DNA of 64,000 nucleotides from Anaeramoeba ignava BMAN (GCA_028826165.1 JAPDFW010000098.1:175173-239172), one strand, 5' to 3'. Shown: positions 42,470 to 64,000, counted from the stretch's first letter. Program-made: numbers and translations. The notes: generated from the sequence alone by a model not told the origin.

Positions 42470-43945
42470 CAAGATCAATTTTTTCAAAATTCTTCAAAAT
42501 TAATTAACGATTTTAAAAAACTAAGAACTTCTCAAAATCAATTTTCAGATTTTGAAATTATTATTACAAAAGATCCTCAAAACAAACAAATCCAAAAAAT
42601 AATTAATTGCCATAAAGCAATTCTTTCTTGTCGATGTGATTATTTCCAAGCTCTATTCCAAAGTAAAATGAAAGAATATCAAGAAAACAAAGTCTATTTC
42701 AACGATATTTCATCAAATATAATGGAGAATATAATTGATTATCTTTATACTGGAAATATTCCAATCAATTCTGAAAACGCGATTGAATTATTAATTTCTT
42801 CAAAAAAATTTCTTTTGGATGATCAACTTATTCAAACACTCAATCAATTCATTTACCAAAATTTGGATCCCTCAAATATAACTGAAGTTCTCCAATTTGC
42901 TTCAAATTTTAATCTGAAAGGATTGCACAGAAAATCCATTGATTTTATTTCGCAAAATTTTGAGAAAGTTAGTTTAACCGATCAAATTCTAAAACTGACA
43001 GAATCTGAGATTCTTTTAATTTTGAATAATCCAAAAATTTATCCAACTTTTTCTGAAATTGAACTGTTCAATACTTTGATAAAATGGGCTCAATTCCATT
43101 TGAATTATATTGTGAACCCAGAATCAATTGAAAATGAAGAACAATCAAACCAAATCCAAAAATTTATCGCAAAATTCATTCCGCAGATTCGTTTCTGTGA
43201 TATTGATAGTGAAAATATCCAGAAAATCAGCAAACTCGAAGTTGTTCCAAAAGGAGTAATGGAAGATATTTGCAAATTCTCAATAGCAGAAAAGGAAGAA
43301 GGAATGGAATTAATGGAGAAATATAACAAAATGGGGTATTTCATTTTCGAAACGAGAAAAAATACTTTTGGAAAATCAAAAATAATCAATCAAAACGATC
43401 AACAATTCATTTATGAACTCAAAAAGTGGATTAACAACCCAAATTTTTTAAAGAAAATGGAACTAGGATATTCAGGAAAAGAAAACGGATGGTTATCAAC
43501 AGATTTCCATTCAAGATGTGATAACAAGGGAGAAATACTCGTTTTAATAAAAACAAGCAAGGATTGCATTTTTGGAGCTTATTCAAAAGTAGGATTTGTT
43601 AAGAAGGAAACTCTTTGGAAATCACAAATGGATGAAATTGGGAATATTGATGATCCTGATGCTTTTATTTTTTCACTAGTTAATCCAAAAGGTGTTTCTC
43701 TTCAGAAATTCCCTGTCAAAGAAGGATTGAGTGCAATTGTTTATTCTCCTTATTGTGGTCCTGATTTTAATGATTTTAGAGTTGGTGGTTATCCAAAAGA
43801 AAAGTTACTTAATACTGTCGATACTTCTTTTTTCGGTTATCATTTCCATTTACCTGATGGAATGAGATATTATACAAAAGCATCTCAACAATATTTAACA
43901 GGGATAACACCTTGTAAAGTTGTTGAATTGGAAGTTTTTTATTGA
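42464..43945 (+). CDS. BTB-BACK-TLDc protein
   Basis: SDFEII...CHKAILSCRCDYFQALF...IDYLYTG (BTB); SEIELFNTLIKW...QIRF (BACK); DFHSRCDNKGEILVLIKT...IFGAY...AFIFSL...ELEVF (TLDc). Confidence 0.9.
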   Translation: MNQDQFFQNSSKLINDFKKLRTSQNQFSDFEIIITKDPQNKQIQKIINCHKAILSCRCDYFQALFQSKMKEYQENKVYFNDISSNIMENIIDYLYTGNIPINSENAIELLISSKKFLLDDQLIQTLNQFIYQNLDPSNITEVLQFASNFNLKGLHRKSIDFISQNFEKVSLTDQILKLTESEILLILNNPKIYPTFSEIELFNTLIKWAQFHLNYIVNPESIENEEQSNQIQKFIAKFIPQIRFCDIDSENIQKISKLEVVPKGVMEDICKFSIAEKEEGMELMEKYNKMGYFIFETRKNTFGKSKIINQNDQQFIYELKKWINNPNFLKKMELGYSGKENGWLSTDFHSRCDNKGEILVLIKTSKDCIFGAYSKVGFVKKETLWKSQMDEIGNIDDPDAFIFSLVNPKGVSLQKFPVKEGLSAIVYSPYCGPDFNDFRVGGYPKEKLLNTVDTSFFGYHFHLPDGMRYYTKASQQYLTGITPCKVVELEVFY

Positions 43946-44015: not shown

Positions 44016-45788
44016 ATGAATGATTGTTTATTTTTTGGTTTAAATAAAGAACCAATTCTTATAAAAAATGAATCATATAAAATAACAAAACCAATTCAAT
44101 TCAAAAATGAAAATGAAAATGAAAATGAAAATGAAAATGAAAATGAAAATGAAAATGAAAACGAAAAACAAATTAAACAAATTTCATCAGGTTTTTTTTC
44201 AACAATTTTCCTTTTTAAAAATGGAAAAGCAATAGAATATTTAAATGGAAATGATCCAAAACAAAATCCTTCAAAAATCCAAATTGAAGAAAATATTCAA
44301 AAAGTAACTGTTGGTTCTCAAAATGTAGCTATTTTAACAATAGAAGGAAATGTATTTGCCAAAGGGTTAAATATTAATCCAAATAACATAAAAGAATTTA
44401 TCAATATTTCATCATTAATTGAAGATAAAAATGATAGAATAATTGAAGATATTGTTTGTTCTGCTGATTCAATTTATTTATTAACTTCAAATCAAAATGC
44501 TTATGGAATTGGTTCAAATGGATATGGTCAATTTGGTTTTGATTCTAAAACACTTAAAAAAACAGAAAAACCAATTTTAATAATGAAAAATGTTTCTAAA
44601 ATATTTTCAGGAATTTCTTCACTTTTTGTTTTTCTTTTAAATTCAAATCAAGAATTATTTGGATACGGTGATAATAGTGATGGTCAACTTGGATTAGGAG
44701 AATCAAGAAAAAAAGAATCCAAAATACAAAATATTCCAAAAGGTAAAATAATTGATATTCAATGTGGAAATGAATATTCAATAATGTTGATTGAAAATGA
44801 AAATCAAAATCCAAAAAGAAAACTTTATTTAACTGGAGATTCTCTATATAATGGACTTGGCAAAGATGGATATACTTATGAATTTACTGAAATCAAATCA
44901 TCTTTATTTGAAAATGATGATGATATTCTTAATTTTTCTGTTGGATATGCACATACTTTGATTTTAACTTCCAAATCAAAATTAATAGTATTTGGAAGTA
45001 ATTCTCATGGTCAATTAGGAACTGGAGATACAAATAATCAATATATTCCAATTCAAATTGAACTTCCTAAATTAAGATTTAATGAAGATATTTTTAATTA
45101 TCATGTTCTTTGTGGAAATGAAAATTCATTTCTTTATTATTCTTTTTCTTCTTTTTCCAATCTTGAAGAAGATTTGATTAATCTATTTCGAAGAAAAGAA
45201 TTTTGTAATATTTCATTTAAAACCAAAAATGGAGAAATAATTTCAGCTCATAAATTAATATTACAAGCTATAATTGGACAAGATGATCAAATTGAAAAAC
45301 TTCAAGAATTAATTTCAAATAAATCATTTAAAGAATCAAATCAAATATTTGAAATGATTTATTCAAACAATTCCAAAATAAATCCAAAATTATATGAAGA
45401 AATTAAAATTGATTTTAATTTATTTGTATCAATAGAAGAATCAATGAAAGAATTAATTGAATTTGAAAATGAAAAAGATTTTATAATTGAAAGAAAAGAA
45501 AAACAATATAAATTTCCTAAATTAATATTAATAATGAGAAGTAAATTATTCCGAGAAAAATTTTTATCAGTAACAGAAGATAAATCAAATAAAGTTACAG
45601 ATTATAGTGAATTAAGTGATGAATCATTTCAAATATTAGAATATTGGATTTATTCAAATCAAATTAAAGAAGAAATTCAAATTACAAAAGAAATTATTAA
45701 TGAAATTCAAATTGGAATTGATTATTTTCAATTAAATCAAACATATCCAAATTTATTGGATTTATTAATTAACAAATTTAAAAATTAA
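44016..45788 (+). CDS. RCC1-like beta-propeller + tandem BTB-like domains, paralog 1
   Basis: GxNxxGQLG repeats, CG/VGxxHT motifs, DLINLFRRKEFCNISF...AHKLIL, and a second BTB-like segment ending in EYWIYS. Confidence 0.88.
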   Translation: MNDCLFFGLNKEPILIKNESYKITKPIQFKNENENENENENENENENENEKQIKQISSGFFSTIFLFKNGKAIEYLNGNDPKQNPSKIQIEENIQKVTVGSQNVAILTIEGNVFAKGLNINPNNIKEFINISSLIEDKNDRIIEDIVCSADSIYLLTSNQNAYGIGSNGYGQFGFDSKTLKKTEKPILIMKNVSKIFSGISSLFVFLLNSNQELFGYGDNSDGQLGLGESRKKESKIQNIPKGKIIDIQCGNEYSIMLIENENQNPKRKLYLTGDSLYNGLGKDGYTYEFTEIKSSLFENDDDILNFSVGYAHTLILTSKSKLIVFGSNSHGQLGTGDTNNQYIPIQIELPKLRFNEDIFNYHVLCGNENSFLYYSFSSFSNLEEDLINLFRRKEFCNISFKTKNGEIISAHKLILQAIIGQDDQIEKLQELISNKSFKESNQIFEMIYSNNSKINPKLYEEIKIDFNLFVSIEESMKELIEFENEKDFIIERKEKQYKFPKLILIMRSKLFREKFLSVTEDKSNKVTDYSELSDESFQILEYWIYSNQIKEEIQITKEIINEIQIGIDYFQLNQTYPNLLDLLINKFKN

Positions 45789-45932
45789 AATTAAAATTAA
45801 AATTTAAATTAAAATCAAAATCAAAATTAAAATTAAAATTAAAATTAAAATTAAAATTAAAATTAAAATTAAAATTAAAATTAAAATTAAAATTCCAAAA
45901 TTTATTTTTTTCATTTTTTTTCTTTTTCAAAA

Positions 45933-47681
45933 ATGAATGATTGTTTATTTTTTGGTAAAAATCAATATCCAAAACTTATCAAAAATAAACCAAATAAAAT
46001 AATAAAACCAATCCAATTTAAATTTAAAAATGAAAATGAAAATGAAAATGAAAATGGAAATGAAAATGAAAAACAAATTAAACAAATTTCATCAGGAGCA
46101 TTCTCAACAATTTTCCTTTTTAAAAATGGAAAAGCAATAGAATATTCAAATGAAAAAGATTCAAAACAAAATCCTTCAAAAATCCAAATTGAAGAAAATA
46201 TTCAAAAAGTAACTGTTGGTTTTGCAAATGTAGCTATTTTAACAATAGAAGGAAATGTATTTGCCAAAGGGTTATATATTAATCCAAATAATATAAAAGA
46301 ATTTATCAATATTTCATCATTAATTGAAGATAAAAATGATAGAGTAATTGAAGATGTTGTTTGTTCTGCTGATTCAATTTACTTATTAACTTCAAATCAA
46401 AATGCTTATGGAATTGGTTCAAATAATTATGGTCAACTTGGTTTTGATTCTAAAACACTTAAAAAAACAGAAAAACCAATTTTAATAATGAAAAATGTTT
46501 CTAAAATATTTTCAGGAATTTCTTCACTTTTTGTTTTTCTTTTAAATTTAAATCAAGAATTATTTGGATACGGTGATAATAGTGATGGTCAACTTGGGTT
46601 AGGAGAATCAAGAAAAAAAGAATCCAAAATACAAAATATTCCAAAAGGTAAAATAATTGATATTCAATGTGGAAATGAATATTCAATAATGTTGATTGAA
46701 AATCAAAATCAAAATCCAAAAAGAAAACTTTATTCATGTGGAGATTATAGATATAATGGACTTGGCAAAGATGGATATACTTATGAATTTACTGAAATCA
46801 AATCATCTTTATTTGAAAATGACTATATTCGTGAATTTTCTGTTGGAAATGGTGATACTTTGATTTTAACATCCAATTCAAAATTAATAGTATTTGGAAG
46901 TAATTCTCATGGTCAATTAGGAACTGGAGATACAAAACATCAACTAATTCCTATTCAAATTGAACTTCCTAAATTAAGATTTAATGAAGATATTTCCAAT
47001 TATCATGTTCTTTGTGGAAATGAAAATTCATTTCTTTATTATTCTTTTTCTTCTTTTTCCAATCTTGAAGAAGATTTGATTAATCTATTTCGAAGAAAAG
47101 AATTTTGTAATATTTCATTTAAAACCAAAAATGGAGAAATAATTTCAGCTCATAAATTAATATTACAAGCTATAATTGGACAAGATGATCAAATTGAAAA
47201 ACTTCAAGAATTAATTTCAAATAAATCATCTAAAGAATCAAATCAAATATTTGAAATGATTTATTCAAACAATTCCAAAATAAATCCAAAATTATATGAA
47301 GAAATTAAAATTGATTTTAATTTATTTGTATCAATAGAAGAATCAATGAAAGAATTAATTGAATTTGAAAATGAAAAAGATTTTATAATTGAAAGAAAAG
47401 AAAAACAATATAAATTTCCTAAATTAATATTAATAATGAGAAGTAAATTATTCCGAGAAAAATTTTTATCAGTAACAGAAAGTGATTCTAATAAAGTTAC
47501 AGATTATAGTGAATTAAGTGATGAATCATTTCAAATATTTGAATATTGGATTTATTCAAATCAAATTAAAGAAGATATTCAAATTACACAAGAAATTATT
47601 AATGAAATTAAAAAAGGAATTGGTTATTTTCAATTAAATCAAACATATCCAAATTTATTGGATTTATTAATTAAATTTTAA
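45933..47681 (+). CDS. RCC1-BTB protein, paralog 2
   Basis: Intact 582-aa ORF with the same architecture. Confidence 0.88.
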   Translation: MNDCLFFGKNQYPKLIKNKPNKIIKPIQFKFKNENENENENGNENEKQIKQISSGAFSTIFLFKNGKAIEYSNEKDSKQNPSKIQIEENIQKVTVGFANVAILTIEGNVFAKGLYINPNNIKEFINISSLIEDKNDRVIEDVVCSADSIYLLTSNQNAYGIGSNNYGQLGFDSKTLKKTEKPILIMKNVSKIFSGISSLFVFLLNLNQELFGYGDNSDGQLGLGESRKKESKIQNIPKGKIIDIQCGNEYSIMLIENQNQNPKRKLYSCGDYRYNGLGKDGYTYEFTEIKSSLFENDYIREFSVGNGDTLILTSNSKLIVFGSNSHGQLGTGDTKHQLIPIQIELPKLRFNEDISNYHVLCGNENSFLYYSFSSFSNLEEDLINLFRRKEFCNISFKTKNGEIISAHKLILQAIIGQDDQIEKLQELISNKSSKESNQIFEMIYSNNSKINPKLYEEIKIDFNLFVSIEESMKELIEFENEKDFIIERKEKQYKFPKLILIMRSKLFREKFLSVTESDSNKVTDYSELSDESFQIFEYWIYSNQIKEDIQITQEIINEIKKGIGYFQLNQTYPNLLDLLIKF

Positions 47682-48082
47682 AATTAAAATTAAAATTAAA
47701 ATCAAAATTAAAATTAAAATTAAAATTAAAATTAAAATTAAAATTAAAATTAAAATTAAAATTAAAATTAAAATTAAAATTAAAATTAAAATTAAAATTA
47801 AAATTAAAATTAAAATCAAAATCAAAATTAAAATTAAAAATTAAAATTAAAATATTAAAATTAAAAAAAAATTAAAAATTAAAATTAAAATTAAAATTAA
47901 AAATTAAAATCAAAATCAAAATCAAATCAAAATTAAAATTAAAATCAAAATTAAAAAAATTAAAATTAAAATCAAAATTAAAATTAAAATTAAAATTAAA
48001 ATCCAAAATTAAAATTAAAATTAAAATTAAAATTAAAATTAAAATTCCAAAATCATTTTTTTCATTTTTTTTCTTTTCAAAA

Positions 48083-49861
48083 ATGAATGATTGTTTATTT
48101 TTTGGTGATAATCAATTACCAAAACTTATCAAAAATGAACCAAATTCAATAATAAAACCAATTCAATTTAAATTTAAAAATGAAAATGAAAATGAAAATG
48201 AAATTGAAAATGAAATTAAACAAATTGCAATTTGTTATTTTTCAACAATTTTCCTTTTTAAAAATGGAAAAGCAATAGAATATTTAAATGGAAATGATCC
48301 AAATCAAAATCCTTATAAAATCCAAATTGAAAATATTCAAAAAGTAACTGTTGATTCTATAAATGAAGCTATTTTAACAAAAGAAAGAAATGTATTTGCC
48401 AAAGGAAAAGATATTAATCCAAATAATATAAAAGAATTTATCAATATTTCATCATTAATTGAAGATAAAAATGATAGAGTAATTGAAGATATTGTTTCTG
48501 GAGAACATTCATTTTACTTATTAACTTCAAATCAAAATGTTTATGGAATTGGTTCAAATCAATATGGCCAACTTGGTTTTGATTCTGAAACACTTGAAAA
48601 AACAGAAAAACCAATTTTAATGATGAAAAATGTTTCTAAAATATTTTCAGGAGATTCTTCAACTCATGTTTTTCTTTTAAATTCAAATCAAGGATTATTT
48701 GGATGCGGTGAGAATGAATATGGTCAACTTGGATTAGGAAAATCAAAAGAAGACAAAAAAATCCAAAAATTAACCAAAATCCAAAATATTCCAAAAGGTA
48801 AAATAATTGATATTCAATGTGGAAATTATCATTCAATAATGTTGATTGAAAATGAAGATGAAAATCAAAATCCAAAAAGAAAACTTTATTCAATTGGAAA
48901 TTGGTTTTATAATGGACTTGGCAAAGATGGATATACTTATGAATTTACTGAAATCAAATCATCTTTATTTGAAAATGACTATATTCGTGAATTTTCTGTT
49001 GGAAATGGTGATACTTTGATTTTAACATCCAATTCAAAATTAATAGTATTTGGAAGTAATTCTCATGGTCAATTAGGAACTGGAGATACAAAACATCAAC
49101 TAATTCCTATTCAAATTGAACTTCCTAAATTAAGATTTAATGAAGATATTTCCAATTATCATGTTCTTTGTAGAAATAATAAATCATTTCTTTATTGGTC
49201 TTCTCCTTTTCTTTCTTCTTTTTCCAATCTTGAAGAAGATTTGATTAATCTATTTCGAAGAAAAGAATTTTGTGATATTTCATTTAAAACCGAAGATGGA
49301 GAAATAATTTCAGCTCATAAATTAATATTACAAGCTATAATTGGACAAGATGATCAAATTGAAAAACTTCAAGAATTAATTTCAAATAAATCATCTAAAG
49401 AATCAAATCAAATATTTGAAATGATTTATTCAAACAATTCCAAAATAAATCCAAAATTATATGAAGAAATTAAAATTGATTTTAATTTATTTGTATCAAT
49501 AGAAGAATCAATGAAAGAATTAATTGAATTTGAAAATGAAAAAGATTTTATAATTGAAAGAAAAGAAAAACAATATAAATTTCCTAAATTAATATTAGTA
49601 ATGAGAAGTAAATTATTCCGAGAAAAATTTTTATCAGTAACAGAAAGTGATTCTAATAAAGTTACAGATTATAGTGAATTAAGTGATGAATCATTTCAAA
49701 TATTAGAATATTGGATTTATTCAAATCAAATTAAAGAAGAAATTCAAATTACAAAAGAGATAATTAATGAAATTCAAATTGGAATTGGTTATTTTCAATT
49801 AAATCAAACAAATCCAAATTTATTGGATTTATTAATTAAGAAATTTAAAAATCAAAATTAA
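48083..49861 (+). CDS. RCC1-BTB protein, paralog 3
   Basis: Intact 592-aa ORF with the same architecture. Confidence 0.88.
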   Translation: MNDCLFFGDNQLPKLIKNEPNSIIKPIQFKFKNENENENEIENEIKQIAICYFSTIFLFKNGKAIEYLNGNDPNQNPYKIQIENIQKVTVDSINEAILTKERNVFAKGKDINPNNIKEFINISSLIEDKNDRVIEDIVSGEHSFYLLTSNQNVYGIGSNQYGQLGFDSETLEKTEKPILMMKNVSKIFSGDSSTHVFLLNSNQGLFGCGENEYGQLGLGKSKEDKKIQKLTKIQNIPKGKIIDIQCGNYHSIMLIENEDENQNPKRKLYSIGNWFYNGLGKDGYTYEFTEIKSSLFENDYIREFSVGNGDTLILTSNSKLIVFGSNSHGQLGTGDTKHQLIPIQIELPKLRFNEDISNYHVLCRNNKSFLYWSSPFLSSFSNLEEDLINLFRRKEFCDISFKTEDGEIISAHKLILQAIIGQDDQIEKLQELISNKSSKESNQIFEMIYSNNSKINPKLYEEIKIDFNLFVSIEESMKELIEFENEKDFIIERKEKQYKFPKLILVMRSKLFREKFLSVTESDSNKVTDYSELSDESFQILEYWIYSNQIKEEIQITKEIINEIQIGIGYFQLNQTNPNLLDLLIKKFKNQN

Positions 49862-50002
49862 AATTAAAATCAAAATTAAAATCAAAATTAAAATTAAAAT
49901 CAAAATTAAAATCAAAATTAAAATTTAAATTAAAATTAAAATTAAAATTAAAATTAAAATTAAAATTCCAAAATCATTTTTTCATTTTTTTTCTTTTCAA
50001 AA

Positions 50003-51766
50003 ATGAATGATTGTTTATTTTTTGGTTCAAATCTAAATCCAATTCTTATCAAAAATGAACCAGATAAAATAACAAAACCAATCCAATTTAAATTTGAAAA
50101 TGAAAATGAAAATGAAAAACAAATTAAACAAATTTCATCAAGAGCATTCTCAACAATTTTCCTTTTTAAAAATGGAAAAGCAATAGAATATTCAAATGAA
50201 AAAGATTCAAAACAAAATCCTTATAAAATCCAAATTGAAAATATCCAAAAAGTAACTGTTAGTTCTCAAAATGTAGCTATTTTAACAATAGAAAGAAATG
50301 CATTTGTAAAAGGAAGAGATATTAATCCAAATAATCCAAGTGAATTTATCAATATTTCATCATTAATTGAAGATACAAATGATAGAATAATTCAAGATAT
50401 TGTTTCTGGAGTTTTTTCAATTTACTTATTAACTTCAAATCAAAATGCTTATGGAATTGGTTCAAATGGATATGGTCAACTTGGTTTTGATTCTGAAACA
50501 CTTAAAAAAACAGAAAAACCAATTTTAATGATGAAAAATGTTTCTAAAATATTTTCAGGAACTTATTCAGATCATGTTTTTCTTTTAAATTCAAATCAAG
50601 AATTATTTGTATGCGGATATAACGAATATGGTCAACTTGGATTAGGAGAATCAAGAAGAAAAGAAATCAAAATCCAAAAATTAACCAAAATCCAAAATAT
50701 TCCAAAAGGCAAAATAATTGATATTCAATGTGGATATGGTTATTCAATAATGTTAATTGAAGATGAAAATGAAAATCCAAAAAGAAAACTTTATTCATGT
50801 GGAAATTATCGATATAATGGACTTGGCAAAAATGAAGATACTTATAAATTTACTGAAATCAAATCATCTTTATTTGAAAATGATTATATTCTTGATATTT
50901 CTGTTGGATGTTATCATACTTTGATTTTAACTTCTAATTCAAAATTAATAGTATTTGGAGATAATAGATATGGTGAATTAGGAGCTGGAGATACAAAACA
51001 TCAATCAATTCAAATTCAAATTGAACTTCCTAAATTAAGATTTAATGAAGATATTTCTAATTATCATCTTTCTTGTGGCTTTTATGAATCATTTCTTTAT
51101 TATTCTCCTCCTTCTTTTTCCAATATTGAAGAAGATTTGATAAAATTATTTGAAAGAAAAGAATTTTGTGATATTTCATTTAAAACCAAAAATGGAGAAA
51201 TAATTGAAGCTCATAAATTAATATTGAAATATAGATTAAATCAAAATGAAAATCAAATTGAAATTGAAAAACTTGAAGAAATTATTTCAAATAAATCAAT
51301 TAAAGAATCAAATCAAATATTTGAAATGATTTATTCAAATAATTCCAAAATAAATCCAAAATTATATGAAGAAATTAAAATTGATTTTAATTTATTTGTA
51401 TCAATAGAAGAATCAATGAAAGAATTAATTGAATTTGAAAATGAAAAAGATTTTATAATTGAAAGAAAAGAAAAACAATATAAATTCCCTAAATCAATAT
51501 TAATAATGAGAAGTAAATTATTCCGAGAAAAATTTTTATCTGTAACAGAAGATAAATCTAATAAAGTTACAGATTATAGTGAATTAAGTGATGAATCATT
51601 TCAAATATTTGAATATTGGATTTATTCAAATCAAATTAAAGATGAAATTCAAATTACACAAGAAATTATTGATGAAATTCAAATTGGAATTGATTATTTT
51701 CAATTAAATCAAACAAATCCAAATTTATTTGATTTATTAATTAATAAATTTAATAATCAAAATTAA
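50003..51766 (+). CDS. RCC1-BTB protein, paralog 4
   Basis: Intact 587-aa ORF with the same architecture. Confidence 0.88.
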   Translation: MNDCLFFGSNLNPILIKNEPDKITKPIQFKFENENENEKQIKQISSRAFSTIFLFKNGKAIEYSNEKDSKQNPYKIQIENIQKVTVSSQNVAILTIERNAFVKGRDINPNNPSEFINISSLIEDTNDRIIQDIVSGVFSIYLLTSNQNAYGIGSNGYGQLGFDSETLKKTEKPILMMKNVSKIFSGTYSDHVFLLNSNQELFVCGYNEYGQLGLGESRRKEIKIQKLTKIQNIPKGKIIDIQCGYGYSIMLIEDENENPKRKLYSCGNYRYNGLGKNEDTYKFTEIKSSLFENDYILDISVGCYHTLILTSNSKLIVFGDNRYGELGAGDTKHQSIQIQIELPKLRFNEDISNYHLSCGFYESFLYYSPPSFSNIEEDLIKLFERKEFCDISFKTKNGEIIEAHKLILKYRLNQNENQIEIEKLEEIISNKSIKESNQIFEMIYSNNSKINPKLYEEIKIDFNLFVSIEESMKELIEFENEKDFIIERKEKQYKFPKSILIMRSKLFREKFLSVTEDKSNKVTDYSELSDESFQIFEYWIYSNQIKDEIQITQEIIDEIQIGIDYFQLNQTNPNLFDLLINKFNNQN

Positions 51767-52111
51767 AATTAAAATTAAAATTAAAATTAAAATTAAAATT
51801 AAAATTAAAATTAAAATTAAAATTAAAATTAAAATTAAAATTAGAATTAAAATTAAAATTAAAATTAAAATTAAAATTAAAATTAAAATTAAAATTAAAA
51901 TCAAAATTAAAATTAATATTAAAATTTAAAATTAAATTAAAATTAAAAATTAAAAAATTAAAATCAAAATCAAAATTAAAATCAAAATTAAAATTAAAAT
52001 TTAAATCAAAATTAAAATTTAAATCAAAATCAAAATTAAAATCAAAATCAAAATTAAAATTAAAATTAAAATTAAAATTAAAATTAAAATTAAAATTAAA
52101 ATTAAAATTAA

Positions 52112-53070
52112 AAATATGAGAATAGATTTAAATTAAATACTAAATTGAAATTAATTTTATTTTATATTTATAAATAAAATTAATACACAAAATATATTAT
52201 TATTAATTAATTTCTTGATATTTAATTAATAAAATATTTTAATTAATTTTTAAATAGAATGGAAATAGATTTAAATTAAGTATTAATTTCAAATTAATTT
52301 TTATTTTATATTTATAAATAAAATTAATTATTAGAAAATATATTATTATTAATTAATTTATTGATATTTAATTAATAAAATATTTTAATTAATTTTTAAA
52401 CAAAATGGAAATAGATTTTAAATTAAATATTAATTTGGAATTAATTTTTATTTTATATTTATAAATAAAATTAATACAAGGAAATATATTATTATTAATT
52501 AATTTTTGATATTTAATTAATAAAAATATTTTAATTAATTTTTAAACAAAATGAGAATAGATTTGAATTAAATATTAATTTGGAATTAATTTTTATTTTA
52601 TATTTATAAATAAAATTAATACTAAAAATATATTATTATTAATTAATTTTTGATATTTAATTAATAAAATATTTTAATTAATTTTTAAAACAAAATAGAA
52701 ATAGATTTGAATTTAATATTAATTTGAAATTAATTTTTATTTTATATTTATAAATAAAATTAAAAACACAAATATATTTTTATTAATTAATTTTATTGAT
52801 ATTTAATTAATAAAATATTTTAATTAATTTTTAAATAGAATGGTAATAGATTTAAATTAAATATTAATTTGGAATTAATTTTTATTTTATATTTATAAAT
52901 AAAATTAATTATTAGAAATATATTATTATTAATTAATTTTTTAATATTTAATTAATAAAATATTTTAATTAACTTTTAAACAAAATGGGAATAGATTTAA
53001 ATTTAATATTAATTTGAAATTAATTTTTATTTTATATTTATAAATAAAATTAATACTAAAAAATGGGATA
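52112..53070. repeat. Tandem array of ~145-bp AT-rich units (about 6.5 copies)
   Basis: AATAGATTT recurs at ~52121, 52264, 52410, 52556, 52700, 52845 and 52990. Confidence 0.95.
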
Positions 53071-53273
53071 AATAAATGGAAAAAATTTAAATAAAAAATA
53101 AAAAAGAAATTTTTTCGAATGAAAAAAAAATTTTAACAAAAAATTTAAATTAAAAAATAAAATAAAAATAAAAAGAAAAAATTTAATTAATTTTATTTTC
53201 ATTCTTTTTCTTTTTTAATAAATTTTTATTTTTAAATTTAAATTTTTTTAAAAACAAAAACAAAAACAACAAA

Positions 53274-53852
53274 ATGCAATCAATTAAATGTGTAGTTGTT
53301 GGAGATGGAGCAGTTGGTAAAACATGTTTATTAATATCATATACAACAAATGCATTTCCAGGAGAATATATACCAACAGTATTTGATAATTATTCAGCCA
53401 ATGTAATGGTAGATGGAAAACCAATCAATTTAGGATTATGGGATACAGCAGGACAAGAAGATTACGATAGATTAAGACCATTATCATATCCACAAACGGA
53501 TGTATTTTTGATTTGCTTTTCATTGATTTCACCTTCTTCTTTTGAAAACGTTAGAGCTAAATGGGTTCCTGAAATTCATCATCATTGTTCTAATGTTCCT
53601 ATGATTCTTGTTGGTACTAAGCTTGATTTGAGAGATGACCAAGATACTATCATGAAACTTGAAGAAAAAGGTTTATCTCCTATTAGTTATCAAGCTGGTA
53701 TGGATATGGCTAAAGAAATTAAAGCGGTTAAATATTTGGAATGTTCTGCTTTGACTCAAAAAAATTTGAAAACTGTTTTTGATGAATCTATTCGTGCTGT
53801 TCTTTCTCCTGTTAAACCTGATAAACCAAAAAAGAAATGCTCTATTTTATAA
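53274..53852 (+). CDS. RAC1: Rac1-like Rho GTPase, intronless
   Basis: [50 protein letters not shown]...; CAAX motif CSIL. Confidence 0.97.
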
Positions 53853-54007
53853 TTTTCTTTTTTTTTTAAAAACAAAAACAAAACAATTTTTTTAATAAAA
53901 TATCTTGTTATTGAAAAATCAAAATCAAAACAATTTTTTTATTTTTTTATTTTTGGAATTCTTTTTTTTTTTTGTTCCACTTTTTTCTTTTTTTAAAAAA
54001 ACAAATT

Positions 54008-55782
54008 TATTATTTAAATATTTAACATAAAAATATAAAAAATAAGAATAGATTTAATTTAATATTTAATTTATAAATTAATTTAAAAATATAATTTAAT
54101 ATTTAATTTTATTATTAAAATAATAATTTAATGTTTTAGGTTTAAATATTTTATTATTTAAATATTTAACATATAAATATAAAAAATAAGAATAGATTTA
54201 ATTTAATATTTAATTTATAAATTAATTTAAAAATATAATTTAATATTTAATTTTATTATTAAAATAATAATTTAATGTTTTATATTTAAATATTTTATTA
54301 TTTTAAATATTTAACAAATAAATATAAAAAATGGGAATAGATTTAATTTAATATTTAATTTATAAATTAATTTAAAAATATAATTTAATATTTAATTTTA
54401 TGTTTAAAATAATAATTTAATGTTTTATATTTAAATATTTTGTTATTTAAATATTTAAAATAAAAATATAAAAATAAGAATAGATTTAATTTAATATTTA
54501 ATTTATAAATTAATTTAAAAATATAATTTAATATTTAATTTTATTATTAAAATAATAATTTATTGTTTTTATATTTAAATATTTTATTATTTAAATATTT
54601 AACATAAAAATATAAAAAAATAAGAATAGATTTAATTTAATATTTAATTTATAAATTAATCCCAAAAATATAATTTAATATTTAATTCTATTATTAAAAT
54701 AGTAATTTAATGTTTTAGATTTAAATATTTTATTATTTAAATATTTAACATATAAATATAAAAATAAGAATAGATTTAATTTAATATTTAATTTATAAAT
54801 TAATTTAAAAATATAATTTAATATTTAGTTTTATTATTAAAATAATAATTTATTGTTTTAGATTTAAATATTTTATTATTAAAAATTTAACATATAAATA
54901 TAAAAATAAGAATAGATTTAATTTAATATTTAATTTAGAAATTAATTTAAAAATATAATTTAATATTTAATTTTATTATTAAAATAATAATTTAATGTTT
55001 TAGATTTAAATATTTTATTATTTAAATATTTAACATAAAAATATAAAAAATAAGAATAGATTTAATTTAATATTTAATTTATAAATTAATTTAAAAATAT
55101 AATTTAATATTTAATTCTATTATTAAAATAATAATTTAATGTTTTAGATTTAAATATTTTATTATTTAAAATATTTAACATATAAATATAAAAATAAGAA
55201 TAGATTTAATTTAATATTTAATTTATAAATTAATTTAAAATATAATTTAATATTTAATTTTATTATTAAAATAATAATTTATTGTTTTAGATTTAAATAT
55301 TTTATTATTTAAATATTTAACATATAAAAATGAAAAATGAAAATAGATTTAATTTAATATTTAATTTATAAATTAATTTAAAAATATAATTTAATATTTA
55401 ATTTTATGTTTAAAATATTAATTTAATGTTTTAAATTTAAATATTTTATTATTTAAATATTTAACATATAAATATCAAAAATAAGAATAGATTTAATTTA
55501 ATATTTAATTTATAAACTAATTTAAAAATATAATTTAATATTTAATTTTATTATTAAAATAATAATTTAATGTTTTAGATTTAATTATTTTATTATTTAA
55601 ATATTTAACATAAAAATATAAAAATGGAAATAGATTTAATTTAATATTTAATTTATAAATTAATTTAAAAATATAATTTAATATTTAATTTATAAATTAA
55701 TTTAAAAATATAATTTAATAATTAATTTTATGTTTAAAATAATAATTTATTGTTTTAGATTTAAATATTTTATTATTTAAAA
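54008..55782. repeat. Tandem array of ~144-bp AT-rich units (about 12 copies)
   Basis: GAATAGATTTAATTTAATATT recurs at ~54046, 54190, 54335, 54478, 54624, 54768, 54910, 55054, 55198 and beyond. Confidence 0.95.
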
Positions 55783-56195
55783 ATATTTTGAAAATTGATT
55801 TTTGAAATTAAAATTTTATCTTTTTTTTGAATTAAATTGAATTAATATTAATTTGGAAATTTGTTTTAAAATTTAAATTTATTAATAATTTTTAAATTCC
55901 AAAAAAAAAAATTAAATTAAAAATTAAATTAAAATAATTTTCCTTTTTTTTTTAATAATAAAAATTAATAAAAAATAATAATAATTTATTAATAAATTAA
56001 TTTAAAATAATAAATTAAAAAGAAAATTAAATTAATTATTAATTTAAATTTATTCTTATTTTTTATATTTTTATTTATTTTCAAAATCCACTTTTTATTC
56101 ATTTTTTTATTAAATTTTTTTTTTCATTTTTTTCCTTTTTTTTTTAAAAACAAAAAACAAAAATACAAAAACAAAAACACAGAAACAAAAACAAA

Positions 56196-57912
56196 ATGGA
56201 TAACAATAATAATAACCAAATTGAAAATGAAAATGAAAATGAAAATGAAATGAAAAATTTAGAAAAAAAAGGTAACAAAAAATTTAATTAAAGATTATTC
56301 AAACCTTTTAAATGGAAATTCATTTAAAGATTTTTCAATTTTTGTTGAGAATAAATCAAATCCTTTTGAAATTAAAGTTCATAAATCAATTTTATCTTCA
56401 AGATCTCCTTTTTTTAATGAGTCATTAAGGCAAGAATCTCTTTCTATTTTTTTAAATCAATTTAATAAAAAAGAAATGGAATCAATTTTGAGTTATATTT
56501 ATTATGGAAATATTTCTTTTGAGAATCAAGAAAATCTTATTCAATTATTAGAAATTTCAATTTATTTTAAATTAAATTTATTGAAAGAAATTATTCAAAA
56601 AAAAATTTCAAATTCAATTAATTATTCAAATTTTTTCCAATTTTTATTCCAAAATCGAAATTTAAATTCAAATGAAATTGAAATAAAATGTTTTGAATTA
56701 ATAAATCAAAATTTTTCCCAAATTCAGAATAATGAGAATTTATTCAATTTAACTAAAGAAGAAATTATCAAATTTATTCAATTTAAACAAGAAAAAAAAG
56801 AAATTTTTCAATTTGATTTTTTTCAATTTTTAAATAATTGGATTAAAAAAAGGGTTAATTCATTAAAATTAAAGAAAGAAAAAGAAAAAGAAAAAGAAAA
56901 GGGAATTGAAAAGAAAAGATTATTTCATTCTTTTTTTTCATTATTTGATAAAGATTCAATTTCAAAACAAGATTTTGATAAATTAAAACAATTTGATTTT
57001 TTTCTTCCAAATTCTTTTTTAGTTTATATTCAAAACAAAGTTATTCAAGATAATCAAAAAGAGATTGAAAACCAAAAGAAAGAAAAAGAAATTGAAGAGA
57101 AATGGAAGAAAGAGGTTGAGAATAAAAATAAAGAAATTGAAGAGAAATGGAAGAAAGAAATTGAAGAGAAATGGAAGAAAGAAGTTGAAGAGAAATGGAA
57201 GAAAGAAGTTGAAGATAAAAACAAAGAAATTGAAGATAAAAACAAAGAAATTGAAGATAAAAACAAAGAAATTGAGAAAATGAAACCTATTTTTGATAAA
57301 TATCGAGATCAATACCAAAAATATTTGGAATATGAACAACAAATGAAAGAATTGGAAAAAGTATTTTCAGATTCAGAAATTATTCAAGATATTGAATATG
57401 TTAAGAAATTACAAGAATGGATAAATGATAATGATTTTTTTTCTAAAATGAAAAAAGGATTTTCAGCAAAAAGAGATGGATTTTCTTGTCAAAATTGGCA
57501 TAAAGCAGTTGATGGGAAAGGAAAAACATTAGTTATTATCAAAACAAAAGATAATTTTATTTTTGGAGGTTTTACTCAAGTTGGATTTAATGGAGATAAA
57601 GGAAACATTTATGATTCAAATGCATTTATTTTTTCATTAAGAAATGATAAAGGAGATAGAATACCTGAAAAGTTTACACATAAACAAGGTCGTGCAATTT
57701 TGTCTAGTTTAAGTTATGGTCCAAGTTTTGGTGGATATGGTGGATATTATGATTTTCAATTATCTTCTAATTTACAACCTGGTTGTTCAGAATTTGGTCA
57801 TACTTATCATCTTCCTAATGGAATTACTTATAATTCAAATGAAGCTCAAAGTTATTTAGCTGGTTCTTATGATAAATGGGTTGTTGATGAAGTTGAAACT
57901 TATTTTATTTAA
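56196..57912 (+). CDS. BTB-coiled-coil-TLDc protein
   Basis: KDFSIF...KVHKSILSSRSPFF...LSYIYYG (BTB), (EIEEKWKK)n coiled coil, WHKAVDGKGKTLVIIKTKDNFIFGGFT...AFIFSL...EVETY (TLDc). Frame break at ~56270. Confidence 0.85.
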
Positions 57913-58379
57913 AAATTAATTAATAATAAGAAAATCAAACTTTTTTTTTTAATTTTTTTTTTCAAAATTTAATTCAATTTTAATTTACTTTTAATCAAAT
58001 TAATTTCTTTAAAATAATAAATAAGAAACAAATTTAATTTTAAATAATTTAATTTTAATTTAAAATATTTATTAAAAATTTAATTAATAAAAATAATCCA
58101 AAAAAAAAATAATAAATTTTAAAAATTGAATATTTTTAATATAATAAATAAAAATAAAAATTGAAAATAGAAATTAATAATAATTAAATTTAAATTCATT
58201 AATTAAAATATTAAAATAAAAAAAATCAAATAAAATTTATTATTAATTAATATTTAAATATTAATAAATTATAATCAAAATCAAAAATAGAATAATTAGT
58301 AAATTATTTTTTTAGAAAGTTTATCTTATTCAATCATGTTAAATTCAATTTATTTAAAATTTTTTAATTTTTTAATTTT

Positions 58380-58875
58380 ATTTTTTAATATATTTTATTA
58401 TAATTAAAATTGGAATAATAAATAATTAAAAATATTAATATAATAAATAAAAATATTATATCAAATTAAATTAAAATAAATTTAAATTAAATTATTATTA
58501 AATATTATTAAAATTAAATATTTATCTTTATTAAAATATTTATTCCACTTTTTTTAATATATTTTATTATAATTAAAATTGGAATAATAAATAATCAAAA
58601 ATATTAATATAATAAATAAAAATATTATTTCAAATTAAAATAAAATAAATTTAAATTAAATTATTATTAAATATTATTAAAATTAAATATTTATTTTTAT
58701 TAAAATATTTATTCCACTTTTTAATATATTTTATTATAATTAAAATTGGAATAATAAATAATTAAAAATATTAATTTAATAAATAAAAATATTATTTCAA
58801 ATTAAAATAAAATAAATTTAAATTAAATTATTGTTAAATATTATTAAAATTAAATATATATCTTTATTAAAATAT
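58380..58875. repeat. Tandem array of ~168-bp units (about 3 copies)
   Basis: TGGAATAATAAATAA recurs at ~58411, 58580 and 58748. Confidence 0.85.
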
Positions 58876-58889
58876 TTCAATTTTCTTCT

Positions 58890-59456
58890 CAATTTTATTA
58901 AATTATTGGGAATTATTTTATATTATTTTAAATAAAGAAATATTAATAAAATATATAAAATATGATTAATTTTAAATTTAATTATTTAATATTCTTTATT
59001 CTATTTTGAAATAAATTAATTAAAAATATTTTATTAATTTTATTAAATTATTGGGAATAATTTTATATTATTTTAAATAAAGAAATATTAATAAAATATA
59101 TAAAATATAATTAATTTTAAATTTAATTATTTAATATTCTTTATTCCATTTTTGAAATAAATTAATTAAAATATTTTATCAATTTTATTAAATTATTGGG
59201 AATAATTTTATATTATTTTAAATAAAGAAATATTAATAAAATATATAAAATAAAGAATTAATTTTAAATTTAATTATTTAATATTCTTTATTTCATTTTT
59301 GAAATAAATTAATCAAAATATTTTATTTATTTTATTAAATTATTGGGAATAATTTTATATTATTTTAAATAAATAAATATTAATAAAATATATAAAATAT
59401 AATTATTTCTAAATTTAATTATTTAATATTCTTTATTCCATTTTTGAAATAAATTA
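58890..59456. repeat. Tandem array of ~145-bp units (about 4 copies)
   Basis: TTATTGGGAAT recurs with its GGG at ~58908, 59053, 59198 and 59345. Confidence 0.9.
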
Positions 59457-59773
59457 ATGAAAAAGATTTTATTATTGAAAGAAAAGAAAAACAATATAAA
59501 TTTCCTAAATTAATATTAATAATGAGAAGTAAATTATTCCGAGAAAAGTTTTTATCAGTAACAGAAGATAAATCAAATAAAGTTACAGATTATAGTGAAT
59601 TAAGTAATAAATCATTTCAAATATTTGAATATTGGATTTATTCAAATCAAATTAAAGAAGAAATTCAAATTACACAAGAAATAATTGAAGAATTAGAAAC
59701 AGGAATTGATTATTTTCAATTAAATCAAACAAATCCAAATTTATTTGATTTATTAATTAAAATTAAAATTTAA
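59456..59773 (+). pseudogene. 3' fragment of an RCC1-BTB paralog (second BTB only)
   Basis: Homology starts abruptly at AATGAAAAAGATTTT (NEKDF), directly after the 145-bp array. Confidence 0.85.
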
Positions 59774-59888
59774 ATTTAAATTAAAATTAAAATTAAAATT
59801 AAAATTAAAATCAAAATTAAAATTAAAATTAAAATTAAAATTAAAATTAAAATTCCAAAATCATTTTTTCATTTTTTTCTTTTCAAAA

Positions 59889-61723
59889 ATGAATGATTGT
59901 TTATTTTTTGGTTATAATAAAGAACCAATTCTTATAAAAAATGAACCAAACAAAATAATAAAACCAATCCAATTTAAATTTGAAAATGAAAATGAAAATG
60001 AAAATGAAAATGAAAATGAAAATGAAAATGAAAATGAAAATGAAAATGAAAATGAAAAACAAATTAAACAAATTTCATCAGGTTATTTTCAACAATTTTC
60101 CTTTTTAAAAATGGAAAAGCAATAGAATATTTAAATGAAAATGATTCAAAACAAAATCCTGAAAAAATCCAAATTGAAGAAAATATTCAAAAAGTAACTG
60201 TTGATTATCGAAATGAAGCTATTTTAACAATAGAAGGAAATGTATTTGCCAAAGGAAAAGATATTAATCCAAAAAATCCAAATGAATTTATCAATATTTC
60301 ATCATTAATTGAAGATACAAATGATAGAATAATTGAAGATATTGTTTCTGGAGGTTTTTCATTTTACTTATTAACTTCGAATCAAAATGTTTATGGAATT
60401 GGTTCAAATTATTTTGGTCAACTTGGTTTTGATTCTGAAACACTTAAAAAAGCAGAAAAACCAATTTTAATGATGAAAAATATTTCTAAAATATTTTCAG
60501 GAATTTCTTGTTATCATGTTTTTCTTTTAAATTCAAATCAAGAATTATTTGGATGCGGAAATAACGAGAATGGTCGACTTGGCTTAGGAGAATCAAGAAA
60601 AGAAGAAACAAAAATTCAAAAATTAACCAAAATCCAAAATATTCCAAAAGGTAAAATAATTGATATTCAATGTGGAGTTTTTCATTCAATAATGTTGATT
60701 GAAAATGAAAATGAAAATGAAAATGAAAATGAAAATCCAAAAAGAAAACTTTATTCATGTGGATATTGCAGATATAATGGACTTAGTAAAGAAAACGAAG
60801 ATACTTATGAATTTACTGAAATCAAATCATCTTTATTTGAAAATGATGATAATATTCTTGATATTTCTGTTGGAGATTCTCATAATTTAGTTTTCACAAC
60901 TCAAGGAAAACTTTTAGGATTTGGAAGAAATTTATTTAATCAATTAGGAATTGTAAATACACAAGATAAATTTATCCCAATTCAAATTGAACTTCCTAAA
61001 TTAAGATTTAATGAAAATATTTCCAATTATCATATTTCTTGTGGATATCGAAATTCGTTTCTTTATTATTCTCCTCTTTCTTTTTCCAATCTTGAAGAAG
61101 ATTTGATAAAATTATTTGAAAGAAAAGAATTTTGTGATATTTCATTTAAAACCAAAAATGGAGAAATAATTGAAGCTCATAAATTAATATTGAAATATAG
61201 ATTAAATCAAAATGAAAATCAAATTGAAAAACTTCAAGAAATTATTTCAAAAAAATCAATTAAAGAATCAAATCAAATATTTGAAATGATTTATTCAAAC
61301 AATTCCAAAATAAATCCAAAATTATATTCTGAAATTAAAGAAATTATAAATTCAAATGAAAAAATTGAAGAAACAATGAAAAGAATTTATTTAAATGAAA
61401 ATGAAAATGAAAAAGATTTTATAATTGAAAGAAAAGAAAAACAATATAAATTTCCAAAATTAATATTAATAATGAGAAGTGAATTATATCGAGGAATGTT
61501 TTTATCTGTAACTGAAGATAAATCTAATAAAGTTACAGATTATAGTGAATTAAGTAATAAATCATTTCAAATATTTGAATATTGGATTTATTCAAATCAA
61601 ATTAAAGATGAAATTCAAATTACACAAGAAATAATTGAAGAATTAGAAAGAGGAATTGATTATTTTCAATTAAATCAAACAAATCCAAATTTATTTGATT
61701 TATTAATTAAAATTAAAATTTAA
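59889..61723 (+). CDS. RCC1-BTB protein, paralog 5 (1-nt frameshift at ~60087)
   Basis: Two ORFs join by restoring one T in a T-run (TATTTTCAACA versus TATTTTTCAACA in paralog 3). Error or pseudogene. Confidence 0.75.
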
Positions 61724-61909
61724 TAATCAAAATTAAAATTAAAATTAAAATTAAAATTAAAATTAAAATTAAAATTTAAAAATTAAAATTAAAATTAAAA
61801 TTAAAATTAAAATTAAAATTAAAATTCAAAATTAAAATTAAAATTAAAATTAAAATTAAAATTAAAATTAAAATTCCAAAATCATTTTTTCATTTTTTTC
61901 TTTTCAAAA

Positions 61910-63657
61910 ATGAATGATTGTTTATTTTTTGGTTTTAATAATTATCCAATTCTTTTCAAAAATGAACCAAATAAAATAACAAAATCAATTCAATTTAAAT
62001 TTGAAAATGAAAATAAATTTGAAAATGAAAAACAAATTAAACAAATTTCAACAAGTGAATTTTCAACAATTTTCCTTTTCAAAAATGGAAAAGCAATAGA
62101 ATATTTAGACGAAAATGATCCAAATCAAAATCCTCAAAAAATCCAAATTGAAGAAAATATTCAAAAAGTATCTTTTGGTTATCATAATGAAGCTATTTTA
62201 ACAATAGAAGGAAATGTATTTGCCAAAGGAATTGATATTAATTCAAATAATCCAAAAGAATTTATCAATATTTCATCATTAATTGAAGATAAAAATGATA
62301 GAATAATTCAAGATATTGTTTCAGGAAATAGTTCAATTTACTTATTAACTTCGAATCAAAATGTTTATGGAATTGGTTTGAATTATTCTAGTCAACTTGG
62401 TTTTGATTCTAAAGCACTTTATAAAACAGAAAAACCAATTTTAATGATGAAAAATGTTTCTAAAATATTTTTAGGAAGTACTTCAAATCATGTTTTTCTT
62501 TTAAATTCAAATCAAGAATTATTTGGATGCGGAGATAATAATTATGGTCAACTTGGATTAGGAGAATCAAGAAAAGAAACAAAAATCCAAAAATTAACTC
62601 AAATCCAAAATATTCCAAAAGGTAAAATAATTGATATTCAATGTGGTGTTTCTTTTTCAATAATGTTGATTGAAAATGAAAATGAAAATGAAGATCTAAA
62701 AAGAAAACTTTATTCATGTGGATATTCTCAATTTAATGGACTTGGCAAAGAAGATGAAAATACTTATAAATTTACTGAAATCAAATCATCTTTATTTGAA
62801 AATGATGATATTCTTGTTGAAATTTCTGTTGGAAATGCTCATACTTTGATTTTAACTTCCAATTCAAAATTAATAGTATTTGGATATAATAGATATGGTC
62901 AATTAGGAACTGAAGATACAAAAGAAATACAATTAATCCCAATTCAAATTGAACTTCCTAAATTAAGATTTAATGAAAATATTTCTAATTATCATATTTC
63001 TTGTGGATATCGAAATTCATTTATTTATTATTCTCCTCTTTCTTTTTCCAATATTGAAGAAGATTTGATAAAACTATTTGAAAGAAAAGAATTTTGTGAT
63101 ATTTCATTTAAAACCAAAAATGGAGAAATAATTGAAGCTCATAAATTAATATTGAAATATAGATTAAATCAAAATCAAAATCAAAATGAAAAACTTCAAG
63201 AAATTATTTCAAAAAAATCAATTAAAGAATCAAATCAAATATTTGAAATGATTTATTCAAACAATTCCAAAATAAATCCAAAATTATATTCTGAAATTAA
63301 AGAAATTATAAATTCAAATGAAAAAATTGAAGAAACAATGAAAAGAATTTATTTAAATGAAAATGAAAAAGATTTTATAATTGAAAGAAAAGAAAAACAA
63401 TATAAATTTCCTAAATTAATATTAATAATGAGAAGTGAATTATATCGAGGAATGTTTTTATCTGTACAGAAGATAAATCTAATAAAGTTACAGATTATAG
63501 TGAATTAAGTAATAAATCATTTCAAATATTTGAATATTGGATTTATTCAAATCAAATTAAAGATGAAATTCAAATTACACAAGAAATAATTAATGAAATT
63601 CAAATTGGAATTGATTATTTTCAATTAAAATCAAAATTAAAATTAAAATTAAAATAA
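61910..63657 (+). CDS. RCC1-BTB protein, paralog 6 (frameshift at ~63466; last ~15 codons replaced by microsatellite)
   Basis: TCTGTACAGAA versus TCTGTAACAGAA in paralog 4. Homology continues to DYFQL and then runs into (AAAATT)n. Confidence 0.75.
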
Positions 63658-63876
63658 AAATCAAAATTAAAATTAAAATTAAAATTAAAATTAAAATTAA
63701 AATTAAAATTAAAATTAAAATTAAAATTAAAATTAAAATTAAAATTAAAATTAAAATTAAAATTAAAATTAAAATTAAAATTAAAATTAAAATCAAAATT
63801 AAAATTAAAATTAAAATTAAAATTAAAATTAAAATTAAAATTAAAATTCATTTTTTTCATTTTTTTCTTTTCAAAA

Positions 63877-64000
63877 ATGAATGATTGTTTATTTTTTGGT
63901 TTAAATAATTATCCAAAACTTTTCAAAAATGAACCAAATAAAATAATAAAACCAATTCAATTTAAATTTGAAAATGAAAATGAAAATGAAAAACAAATTA
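63877..64000 (+). CDS. RCC1-BTB protein, paralog 7 (5' end only; runs off the window)
   Basis: MNDCLFFGLNNYPKLFKNEPNKIIKPIQF. Confidence 0.85.
   Translation, partial: MNDCLFFGLNNYPKLFKNEPNKIIKPIQFKFENENENEKQI

Follow-up and report, generated by a model that had tools for sequence, protein, structure and literature searches.

We have analysed a 64,000-nucleotide (nt) stretch of the genome of the anaerobic amoeba Anaeramoeba ignava BMAN (GCA_028826165.1, JAPDFW010000098.1:175173-239172), hereafter the window, in which positions are counted from the first letter. Between positions 44016 and 64000 its + strand carries seven head-to-tail copies of one gene, C1 to C7, and one C-terminal fragment of the same gene (Table 1). 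The gene encodes an RCC1-type propeller followed by two BTB domains, and it belongs to a family of about 1,200 copies in which propeller loops are hypervariable and the BTB-BTB tail is nearly constant. The existence of a diversified, selected repertoire, its variation predicted to lie on one face, on a constant BTB module is well supported.

Five of the seven copies (C1-C4 and C7) are open, and two (C5 and C6) have one reading-frame change each in the assembly. An (AAAATT)n microsatellite follows every copy and starts at or within the stop codon, so that the C-terminal tails vary between copies (…KFNNQN, …IKIKI). These spacers may promote unequal exchange. The conserved leader that occupies about 35 nt upstream of the ATG, seen in the consensus of 73 copies, carries the TCATTTTT motif two to four times and resembles the parabasalid initiator consensus TCAYW.

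A predicted RCC1 propeller joined to two BTB domains

Pfam detected several RCC1 repeats and BTB in each of the copies tested (C1, C3, C4 and C6). RCC1 and RCC1_2 lie over the cut-off in all four, WD40_RLD passes its 150-bit cut-off in C4 only, and PF00651 (BTB) scores 30.7-44.1 bits against a cut-off of 20.5, with matched stretches at 388-456 and 486-575. An AlphaFold2 (AF2) model of C4, the reference copy, was generated from an alignment of 48 family and subfamily members and has a mean predicted local distance difference test (pLDDT) value of 88.5. In this model residues 1-370 form seven four-stranded units with 26 strands, a seven-bladed RCC1-like propeller, and two alpha/beta units of the BTB type follow, at residues 375-477 and 480-587. 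Foldseek matched the propeller to the RCC1-like domains of RPGR, HERC2, RCC1, HERC1 and UVR8 (E ~1e-22, template modelling score by target 0.72-0.82), and UVR8 is the best sequence match among solved structures. The order of an RCC1-like domain and then two BTB domains is the RCBTB-type architecture, and the nearest clusters by features in the ESM Atlas likewise combine an RCC1 propeller with two BTB domains. A signal peptide is absent, since the propeller's closing strand occupies the N-terminus, and the family proteins appear to be cytosolic and RCBTB-like.

A subset of about 10% has a further C-terminal feature. Twelve of 120 family proteins (P0010, P0015, P0016, P0021, P0024, P0026, P0056, P0069, P0082, P0099, P0104 and P0114; loci L013, L018, L023 and L034) end in a polybasic stretch and a CaaX box (…KKKEKCLIF, CSIF, CFIF), which would predict prenylation and membrane anchoring.

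Hypervariable loops, selection and exchange among copies

Variation was measured on an alignment of 38 open genomic copies and 87 other family proteins from the database, and per-column entropy was strongly correlated between the 38 copies and the 87 independent proteins (r=0.95). With a hypervariable column defined by an entropy of at least 1.5 bits, 57 such columns were found in 26 patches, 22 of which lie in the propeller. The C-terminal 200 residues hold just two, both with few alleles, and the BTB-BTB tail is otherwise nearly constant. Multi-column patches are near saturation; one four-column patch has 103 distinct variants among the 125 sequences. At hypervariable sites Y (3.4-fold), H (3.8), W (3.6), D (2.3), R (1.8) and S (1.4) are over-represented, and I, L and M are depleted. 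Among the five open copies of the window, amino acids differ in 64% of comparisons at hypervariable codons versus 7% at scaffold codons. Adenine-limited mutagenesis of the diversity-generating retroelement (DGR) type was considered and rejected on the codon pattern: 26% of hypervariable residues are E, K or Q, and the variation extends to third codon positions.

Membership of a propeller face was argued from strand topology and homology. Each blade runs in the order Sa, loop, Sb, turn, Sc, long loop, Sd, loop, and in this beta meander the Sa-Sb and Sc-Sd loops share one face, with the Sb-Sc and Sd-Sa loops on the opposite face. On the C4 model, the 53 hypervariable sites of the propeller comprise 41 in Sa-Sb or Sc-Sd loops, 11 in adjoining strand ends, one in an Sb-Sc turn and none in an Sd-Sa loop, so that by topology 52 of the 53 are on the same face. 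In an alignment with UVR8, the G-x-x-H patch falls on the W/R of the GWRHT motifs (W233/R234, W285/R286, W337/R338) and the G-x-N-x-x-GQLG patch falls on the WGWGxxGxLG residues, which together form the dimer interface and partner-binding face of that protein (PMC4501546). UVR8 differs in being a conserved single gene without BTB, in which the interface Trp and Arg are fixed. Confinement of the hypervariable sites to one propeller face is, as far as the model and the homology can place them, well supported.

This placement had been proposed in an initial annotation made from the window's sequence, and the loop variants on which it drew were recovered: all seven of its N-terminal strings, and every other variant that it listed, occur in the copies where it had put them. 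Its count of about two variable positions per blade needs correction, since three recurring patches per blade were found, the third sitting at the end of the Sc-Sd loop. It had also called the sites rich in Y, F, W, S, N and R, which holds for Y, W, S and R; F, however, is unenriched and N is at background level, and H and D are enriched too.

In order to measure selection on these positions, hypervariable sites were set on the independent 87-protein set, and Nei-Gojobori counts were then made on the 38 coding sequences, with bootstrap 95% confidence intervals (CI). The nonsynonymous rate (dN) at hypervariable codons was 2.6 times the synonymous rate (dS) of the same codons (CI 2.0-3.5), 2.5 times that of conserved codons no more than 2 codons off (CI 1.8-3.6), and 8.6 times that of silent sites 5 or more codons off (CI 6.2-12.2). 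Conserved scaffold codons gave a dN/dS of 0.25 (CI 0.19-0.33). In the window's five open copies alone, the corresponding ratio of nonsynonymous to synonymous differences per site (pN/pS) is 2.5 for hypervariable versus 0.46 for conserved codons. Because Nei-Gojobori site counts can mislead at 80% A+T, raw nucleotide diversity was also measured. At hypervariable codons it is 0.485, 0.413 and 0.277 at positions 1, 2 and 3, and at four-fold degenerate sites it is 0.200 within 2 codons of a hypervariable site, 0.129 at 3-4 codons and 0.083 farther away. Replacement positions are therefore 2-6 times as diverse as the sites nearest to neutrality that are available. The first position of hypervariable codons is 37% G+C, opposite to the AT mutational bias. 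Diversifying selection, which the initial annotation had implied, is thus upheld, with the dN/dS of hypervariable sites above 1 throughout its interval and not at or below 1.

The copies differ from one another by a narrow range of distances (median pairwise nucleotide distance 0.091, 1-99% range 0.070-0.135), and variants along them are hardly linked. Over 121 common two-allele sites, r2 averages 0.20 up to a distance of 10 nt and 0.03-0.04 at longer distances, against a floor of about 0.03 for 38 sequences; linkage disequilibrium reaches the floor within 10-30 nt, and all four gametes occur in ~90% of site pairs. The 34 intermediate-frequency silent variants in conserved codons are likewise unlinked, and as A/T changes are frequent among them, recurrent mutation does not readily explain this. 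Errors in the consensus of so large a family (1,200 copies) may account for part of this loss of linkage. An identical tract of at least 300 nt occurs in only 1 of 703 copy pairs, so recent whole-gene duplication does not account for the identity of the scaffold.

Mosaic structure can be seen directly in the window, where C2 is all but identical to C1 over nt 480-780 and to C3 over nt 840-1020. Both the BTB1-BTB2 linker and the start of BTB2 come in two sharply distinct cassette forms (e.g. AIIGQDDQIEKL versus KYRLNQNENQIEKL, alignment nt ~1200-1400), which combine differently between copies (C1-C4 and the complete C7 at locus L011). The initial description of the paralogs as nearly identical, silent sites and BTB region included, is accordingly right for the BTB-BTB tail but not for silent sites, which diverge by ~7-10%, nor for the inter-BTB linker with its two forms.

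Most simply, the copies can be read as a recombining population, in which short-tract conversion and unequal exchange homogenise the scaffold and selection diversifies the loops; their recombination is too free for one tree to describe them. Recombination together with loop selection predicts a peak of silent diversity beside selected sites, and silent diversity is indeed threefold higher within 2 codons of hypervariable sites and falls with distance; a local mutational process may produce the same peak. Cassette-like transfer of whole loop patches was ruled out, since columns within a patch vary near-independently. Segments with identical scaffold and different loops were also considered as extra evidence and discounted, their frequency being no more than ~2 times the chance expectation.

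Family size, broken copies and genomic setting

A 23-mer from BTB2 has 1,233 matches genome-wide with up to 2 mismatches, versus 0 for the reversed control, and a mid-propeller 23-mer has 1,155 with up to 3 mismatches, versus 2 for its control. The MNDC-type start motif has 439 matches, fewer than the internal motifs because a second start variant, MNEI, exists. The family thus amounts to ~1,200 copies and ~2.1 Mb of coding-type sequence, ~5% of the 42.8-Mb assembly, in tandem arrays with (AAAATT)n spacers on most large contigs. Among the best 120 full-length protein matches, the close ones all belong to A. ignava (locus tags M0811_). The nearest relative in A. flamelloides is a 1,590-aa protein with 34% identity over part of its length, and the more distant RCC1-BTB genes (34-60% identity) all belong to A. 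ignava as well; together these indicate that the expansion is species-specific. Five longer A. ignava relatives (P0122-P0125 and P0129), 50-73% identical, have N-terminal extensions of 280-540 aa and are annotated 'aardvark', which suggests armadillo-RCC1-BTB fusions or merged gene models. The main text of the genome paper mentions neither RCC1 nor BTB, and in the available part of its supplementary text RCC1/BTB names stand solely in a lateral-transfer annotation table (PMC11550330). With that main text silent on the family, the hypervariable RCC1-BTB repertoire of A. ignava appears to be previously undescribed.

Eleven arrays, picked only for clustered start motifs, hold 36 full-length copies, of which 16 keep one frame and 20 change frame. 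Approximately 6.9% of random single-base changes in family genes yield a stop, and a neutral copy at the observed silent divergence is expected to have 4-5 stops and a probability of ~1% of being open. Open frames are ~50 times commoner than under neutrality, and a fraction of about half set against an expectation of ~1% implies that intact reading frames are maintained. Among the lesions in broken copies are many deletions of 26-41 nt and indels away from homopolymers, neither of which is likely to be sequencing error; the deletions of 26-41 nt show that intact and broken copies are truly distinct. Other lesions are single bases in A/T runs and possibly sequencing errors. Because the assembly derives from R9 Nanopore reads, processed with ABruijn, Racon, Nanopolish and two Pilon rounds, the broken fraction is uncertain. 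The annotation contains many clusters of 143-160-aa C-terminal open reading frames (ORFs) of the family (sizes 44, 20, 19, 13, 10 and others, ~150 members), as expected if many copies are broken. At three loci (L031, L032 and L033), four broken copies have 1-2-nt indels at one TTTCAAATAAATCAAT site (gene nt ~1295-1362), which points either to a hot spot of mutation or to a consensus error that recurs.

Table 1. Features of the array and its surroundings in the window
Feature	Position	Strand	Description	Basis
BTB-BACK-TLDc gene	42389-43945		precedes C1	
Copy C1	44016-45788	+	open, 590 aa, RCC1 propeller and BTB-BTB	ORF; Pfam
Copy C2	45933-47681	+	open, 582 aa; mosaic of C1-like and C3-like stretches	ORF; comparison of copies
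Copy C3	48083-49861	+	open, 592 aa	ORF; Pfam
Leader (example)	49966-50002	+	T-rich, repeated TCATTTTT motifs; abuts ATG; present before every copy	
Copy C4 (reference copy)	50003-51766	+	open, 587 aa	AF2 model; Foldseek; Pfam
C4 propeller	50003-51112	+	aa 1-370	
C4 BTB1			~aa 375-477	
C4 BTB2			~aa 480-587	
Rac-type GTPase	53274-53852		between the two groups of copies	
TLDc protein	56476-57912		Lys/Glu-rich coiled stretch ahead of TLDc; between the two groups of copies	
Lone C-terminal (BTB2) fragment	59456-59773	+	matches reference nt 1438-1764; ORF 59522-59773	blastn
Copy C5	59889-61723	+	broken: 1-nt deletion in T run near 60085-60095	two frames in tblastn; indel listing
Copy C6	61910-~63640	+	broken: 1-nt deletion near 63467, outside homopolymer; 3' end merges into microsatellite	tblastn; indel listing
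Copy C7 (start)	63888-64000	+	extends past window edge; open 590-aa gene in locus L011	
(AAAATT)n microsatellite spacers	45789-45895, 47682-48045, 49862-49965, 59775-59855, 61726-61875, 63640-63845			

Adjoining the lone fragment upstream, at 58300-59450, are ~1.1 kb of very A+T-rich tandem repeats of two types, with units of ~150-180 nt.

Candidate functions and related systems

The best explanation of the whole, which we offer tentatively, is a ~1,200-copy RCBTB-like repertoire with a variable face for changing ligands and a constant BTB tail that couples to Cullin-3 (Cul3). The variable propeller face would bind diverse, fast-changing ligands, which may come from bacteria, viruses or selfish elements met as prey or symbionts. 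The constant BTB tail would link every receptor to one common partner, most likely Cul3, and proteins bound by the propeller would become ubiquitinated. Tandem duplication and unequal exchange in (AAAATT)n-flanked arrays would give rise to the repertoire, and gene conversion among copies, positive selection at the loops and rapid birth and death would shape it. From this we infer an immune or surveillance role; the setting that the initial annotation had imagined, a protist with symbionts, is that of A. ignava, which carries bacterial symbionts. A bolder form is doubtful: in it ~5% of the genome would be a germline-encoded, shuffled system of about a thousand Cul3-coupled receptors for immunity or the policing of symbionts, with the broken copies as a reservoir of loop variants.

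Coupling of the BTB tail to Cul3 is plausible by analogy with RCBTB1, a reported CUL3 substrate adaptor in which two BTB domains likewise follow an RCC1-like domain (PMC4974088). The A. ignava genome has at least eight cullin loci, and the six tested were typed as four Cul4-like, one Cul1/2-like and one Cul3-like. The Cul3-like locus, on contig C58, has Cullin-3 as its best match among solved structures (E 4e-119), and its annotated product (P0277, 736 aa) has Cul3 orthologues as best matches and is found among the transcriptome-derived proteins of EukProt as well. The Cul4-like loci lie on contigs C64, C71, C74 and C109 (L042, L043, L046 and L047), and contig C57 carries a further tandem cullin pair. 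The near-invariance of the BTB tail over ~1,200 copies fits one shared downstream partner.

Several findings weigh against the proposal of a Cul3-coupled repertoire. About half of the sampled copies are frameshifted. In an early Nanopore assembly polished with Pilon, moreover, single-base frameshifts and part of the fine-scale mosaic are possible artefacts. BTB2 resembles the BTB domain of the known Cul3 adaptor KBTBD4 weakly (E 0.016); at the phi-x-E position it has T-E-D under the L-K-E of KBTBD4, or V-T-E with a one-residue shift. When the Cul3 N-terminal domain (P0277 residues 1-385) and the BTB tail were modelled as a complex, the score of 0.20 fell short of the 0.34 mark, which is evidence neither for nor against binding. 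Among the 120 best full-length and 93 tail matches there are no transcriptome-derived A. ignava ORFs of the subfamily from EukProt, a set in which Cul3 and two distant RCC1-BTB genes (P0149 and P0157) do occur. Low or conditional expression could lie behind this absence, and so could the failure of a repetitive family to assemble de novo.

The weak similarity of BTB2 to known adaptors, next to a complex prediction that lends no support yet counts neither way, would also suit diversified binders that act without ubiquitin ligation. Here the BTB domains would serve oligomerisation or another partner, and the propellers would sequester, block or scaffold their ligands, some of them tethered to membranes by a prenyl tail as the polybasic and CaaX ends (12 of 120 proteins, such as CLIF) suggest. 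RCC1-like propellers have many non-ligase partners, as in UVR8, RPGR and RCC1, and the hypervariability of the face would argue against a single conserved GTPase partner of the kind bound by RCC1-type exchange factors. We nonetheless consider such binders unlikely, given a BTB tail near-invariant over the whole family, the presence of a Cul3 orthologue in A. ignava, and the link of RCBTB1, with the same architecture, to CUL3 (PMC4974088).

The extreme species-specific expansion, with its nearest A. flamelloides relative at 34% identity, the rapid birth and death and the many broken copies are also what intragenomic conflict could produce, through adaptors that amplify selfishly or act in incompatibility and that diversify against other host or selfish genes. 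Such an origin has been proposed for nematode F-box and BTB families, and ubiquitin-ligase adaptor families of nematodes are tied to hybrid incompatibility (PMC12951971). The arrays and their flanks, however, showed no partner locus, transposon feature or drive element, and we judge conflict of this kind to be quite improbable.

Broken copies, the missing transcriptome-derived ORFs, the noisy reads under the assembly and the raised silent diversity beside hypervariable codons might instead point to a recent tandem repeat that is mostly non-functional, its loops the product of relaxed constraint, local mutation, biased conversion and, in part, assembly error. Such a repeat is hard to reconcile with a dN 2.5-fold over even the local silent rate, with a CI that excludes 1, and a scaffold dN/dS of 0.25. 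Open frames ~50 times commoner than the neutral expectation, a choice of residues at hypervariable sites that opposes AT bias, and 26-41-nt deletions that make the distinction between intact and broken copies real also stand against it, and its probability is low. Least probable of all is a programmed diversification of the loops by targeted hypermutation or by templated micro-conversion from broken donors (compare chicken immunoglobulin pseudo-V genes and the mosaics of trypanosome variant surface glycoproteins). In its favour are the silent gradient around hypervariable sites, the loss of linkage within 10-30 nt and the large stock of broken copies; against it, the gradient is equally predicted by diversifying selection with recombination, the columns of a patch are near-independent, so that patches are not transferred as cassettes, the abundance of E, K and Q is at odds with adenine-directed DGR-type mutagenesis, and one assembly cannot reveal somatic change.

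The preferred reading, a selected repertoire on a constant tail, has relatives in several known systems. Closest in architecture are RCBTB1, RCBTB2 and the IBtk-like group, in which an RCC1-like propeller also precedes two BTB domains. RCBTB genes are conserved and number one or few per genome, whereas the A. ignava family has ~1,200 copies with hypervariable loops in one species; the likeness lies in the architecture. Closest in evolutionary mode are the fungal HNWD/HET-D/HET-E genes, NACHT-WD40 genes of non-self recognition (PMC1805685, PMC2873952), which share a conserved propeller scaffold, selected positions on an interaction face, exchange among copies and pseudogenes in the pool. Positive diversifying selection in HNWD and HET-E falls on four positions of each WD40 repeat, located on the interaction face, and repeats are exchanged in concert with the involvement of pseudogenes (PMC1805685). 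These genes differ in their WD40 fold and in a NACHT and death-domain effector, where A. ignava has an RCC1 fold and BTB, and their unit of shuffling is the repeat within ~10 genes rather than short tracts between whole genes in ~1,200-copy arrays.

In proposed function the nearest parallels are nematode and grass adaptors of the MATH-BTB and F-box types, which likewise combine lineage-specific expansion, a selected recognition domain and a conserved cullin-binding domain, the Cul3 link being putative in A. ignava. Thomas, in Genome Research in 2006, reportedly described expansions of MATH-BTB and F-box adaptors with positive selection in the substrate-binding domain. An anti-pathogen role has been proposed for such expansions of cullin-ligase adaptors (PMC4091423). 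They differ in recognition domain, which is MATH or FBA rather than an RCC1 propeller, and in scale, with tens to a few hundred members as opposed to ~5% of a genome with loops near saturation. Four things are new here: an RCC1 fold that serves as the variable scaffold, the size that the family has reached, the lineage of its host, and how finely sequence is exchanged.

If the proposed reading is true, the family would rank with the largest diversified recognition repertoires known from unicellular eukaryotes, and would be the first to use an RCC1 propeller. It would extend to Metamonada the design of a constant effector, a conserved scaffold and hypervariable loops. A. ignava must distinguish its bacterial symbionts from its bacterial prey, and the family offers a concrete gene set for studying how a protist polices intracellular bacteria and viruses, as well as a natural library of propeller binders that share one scaffold.

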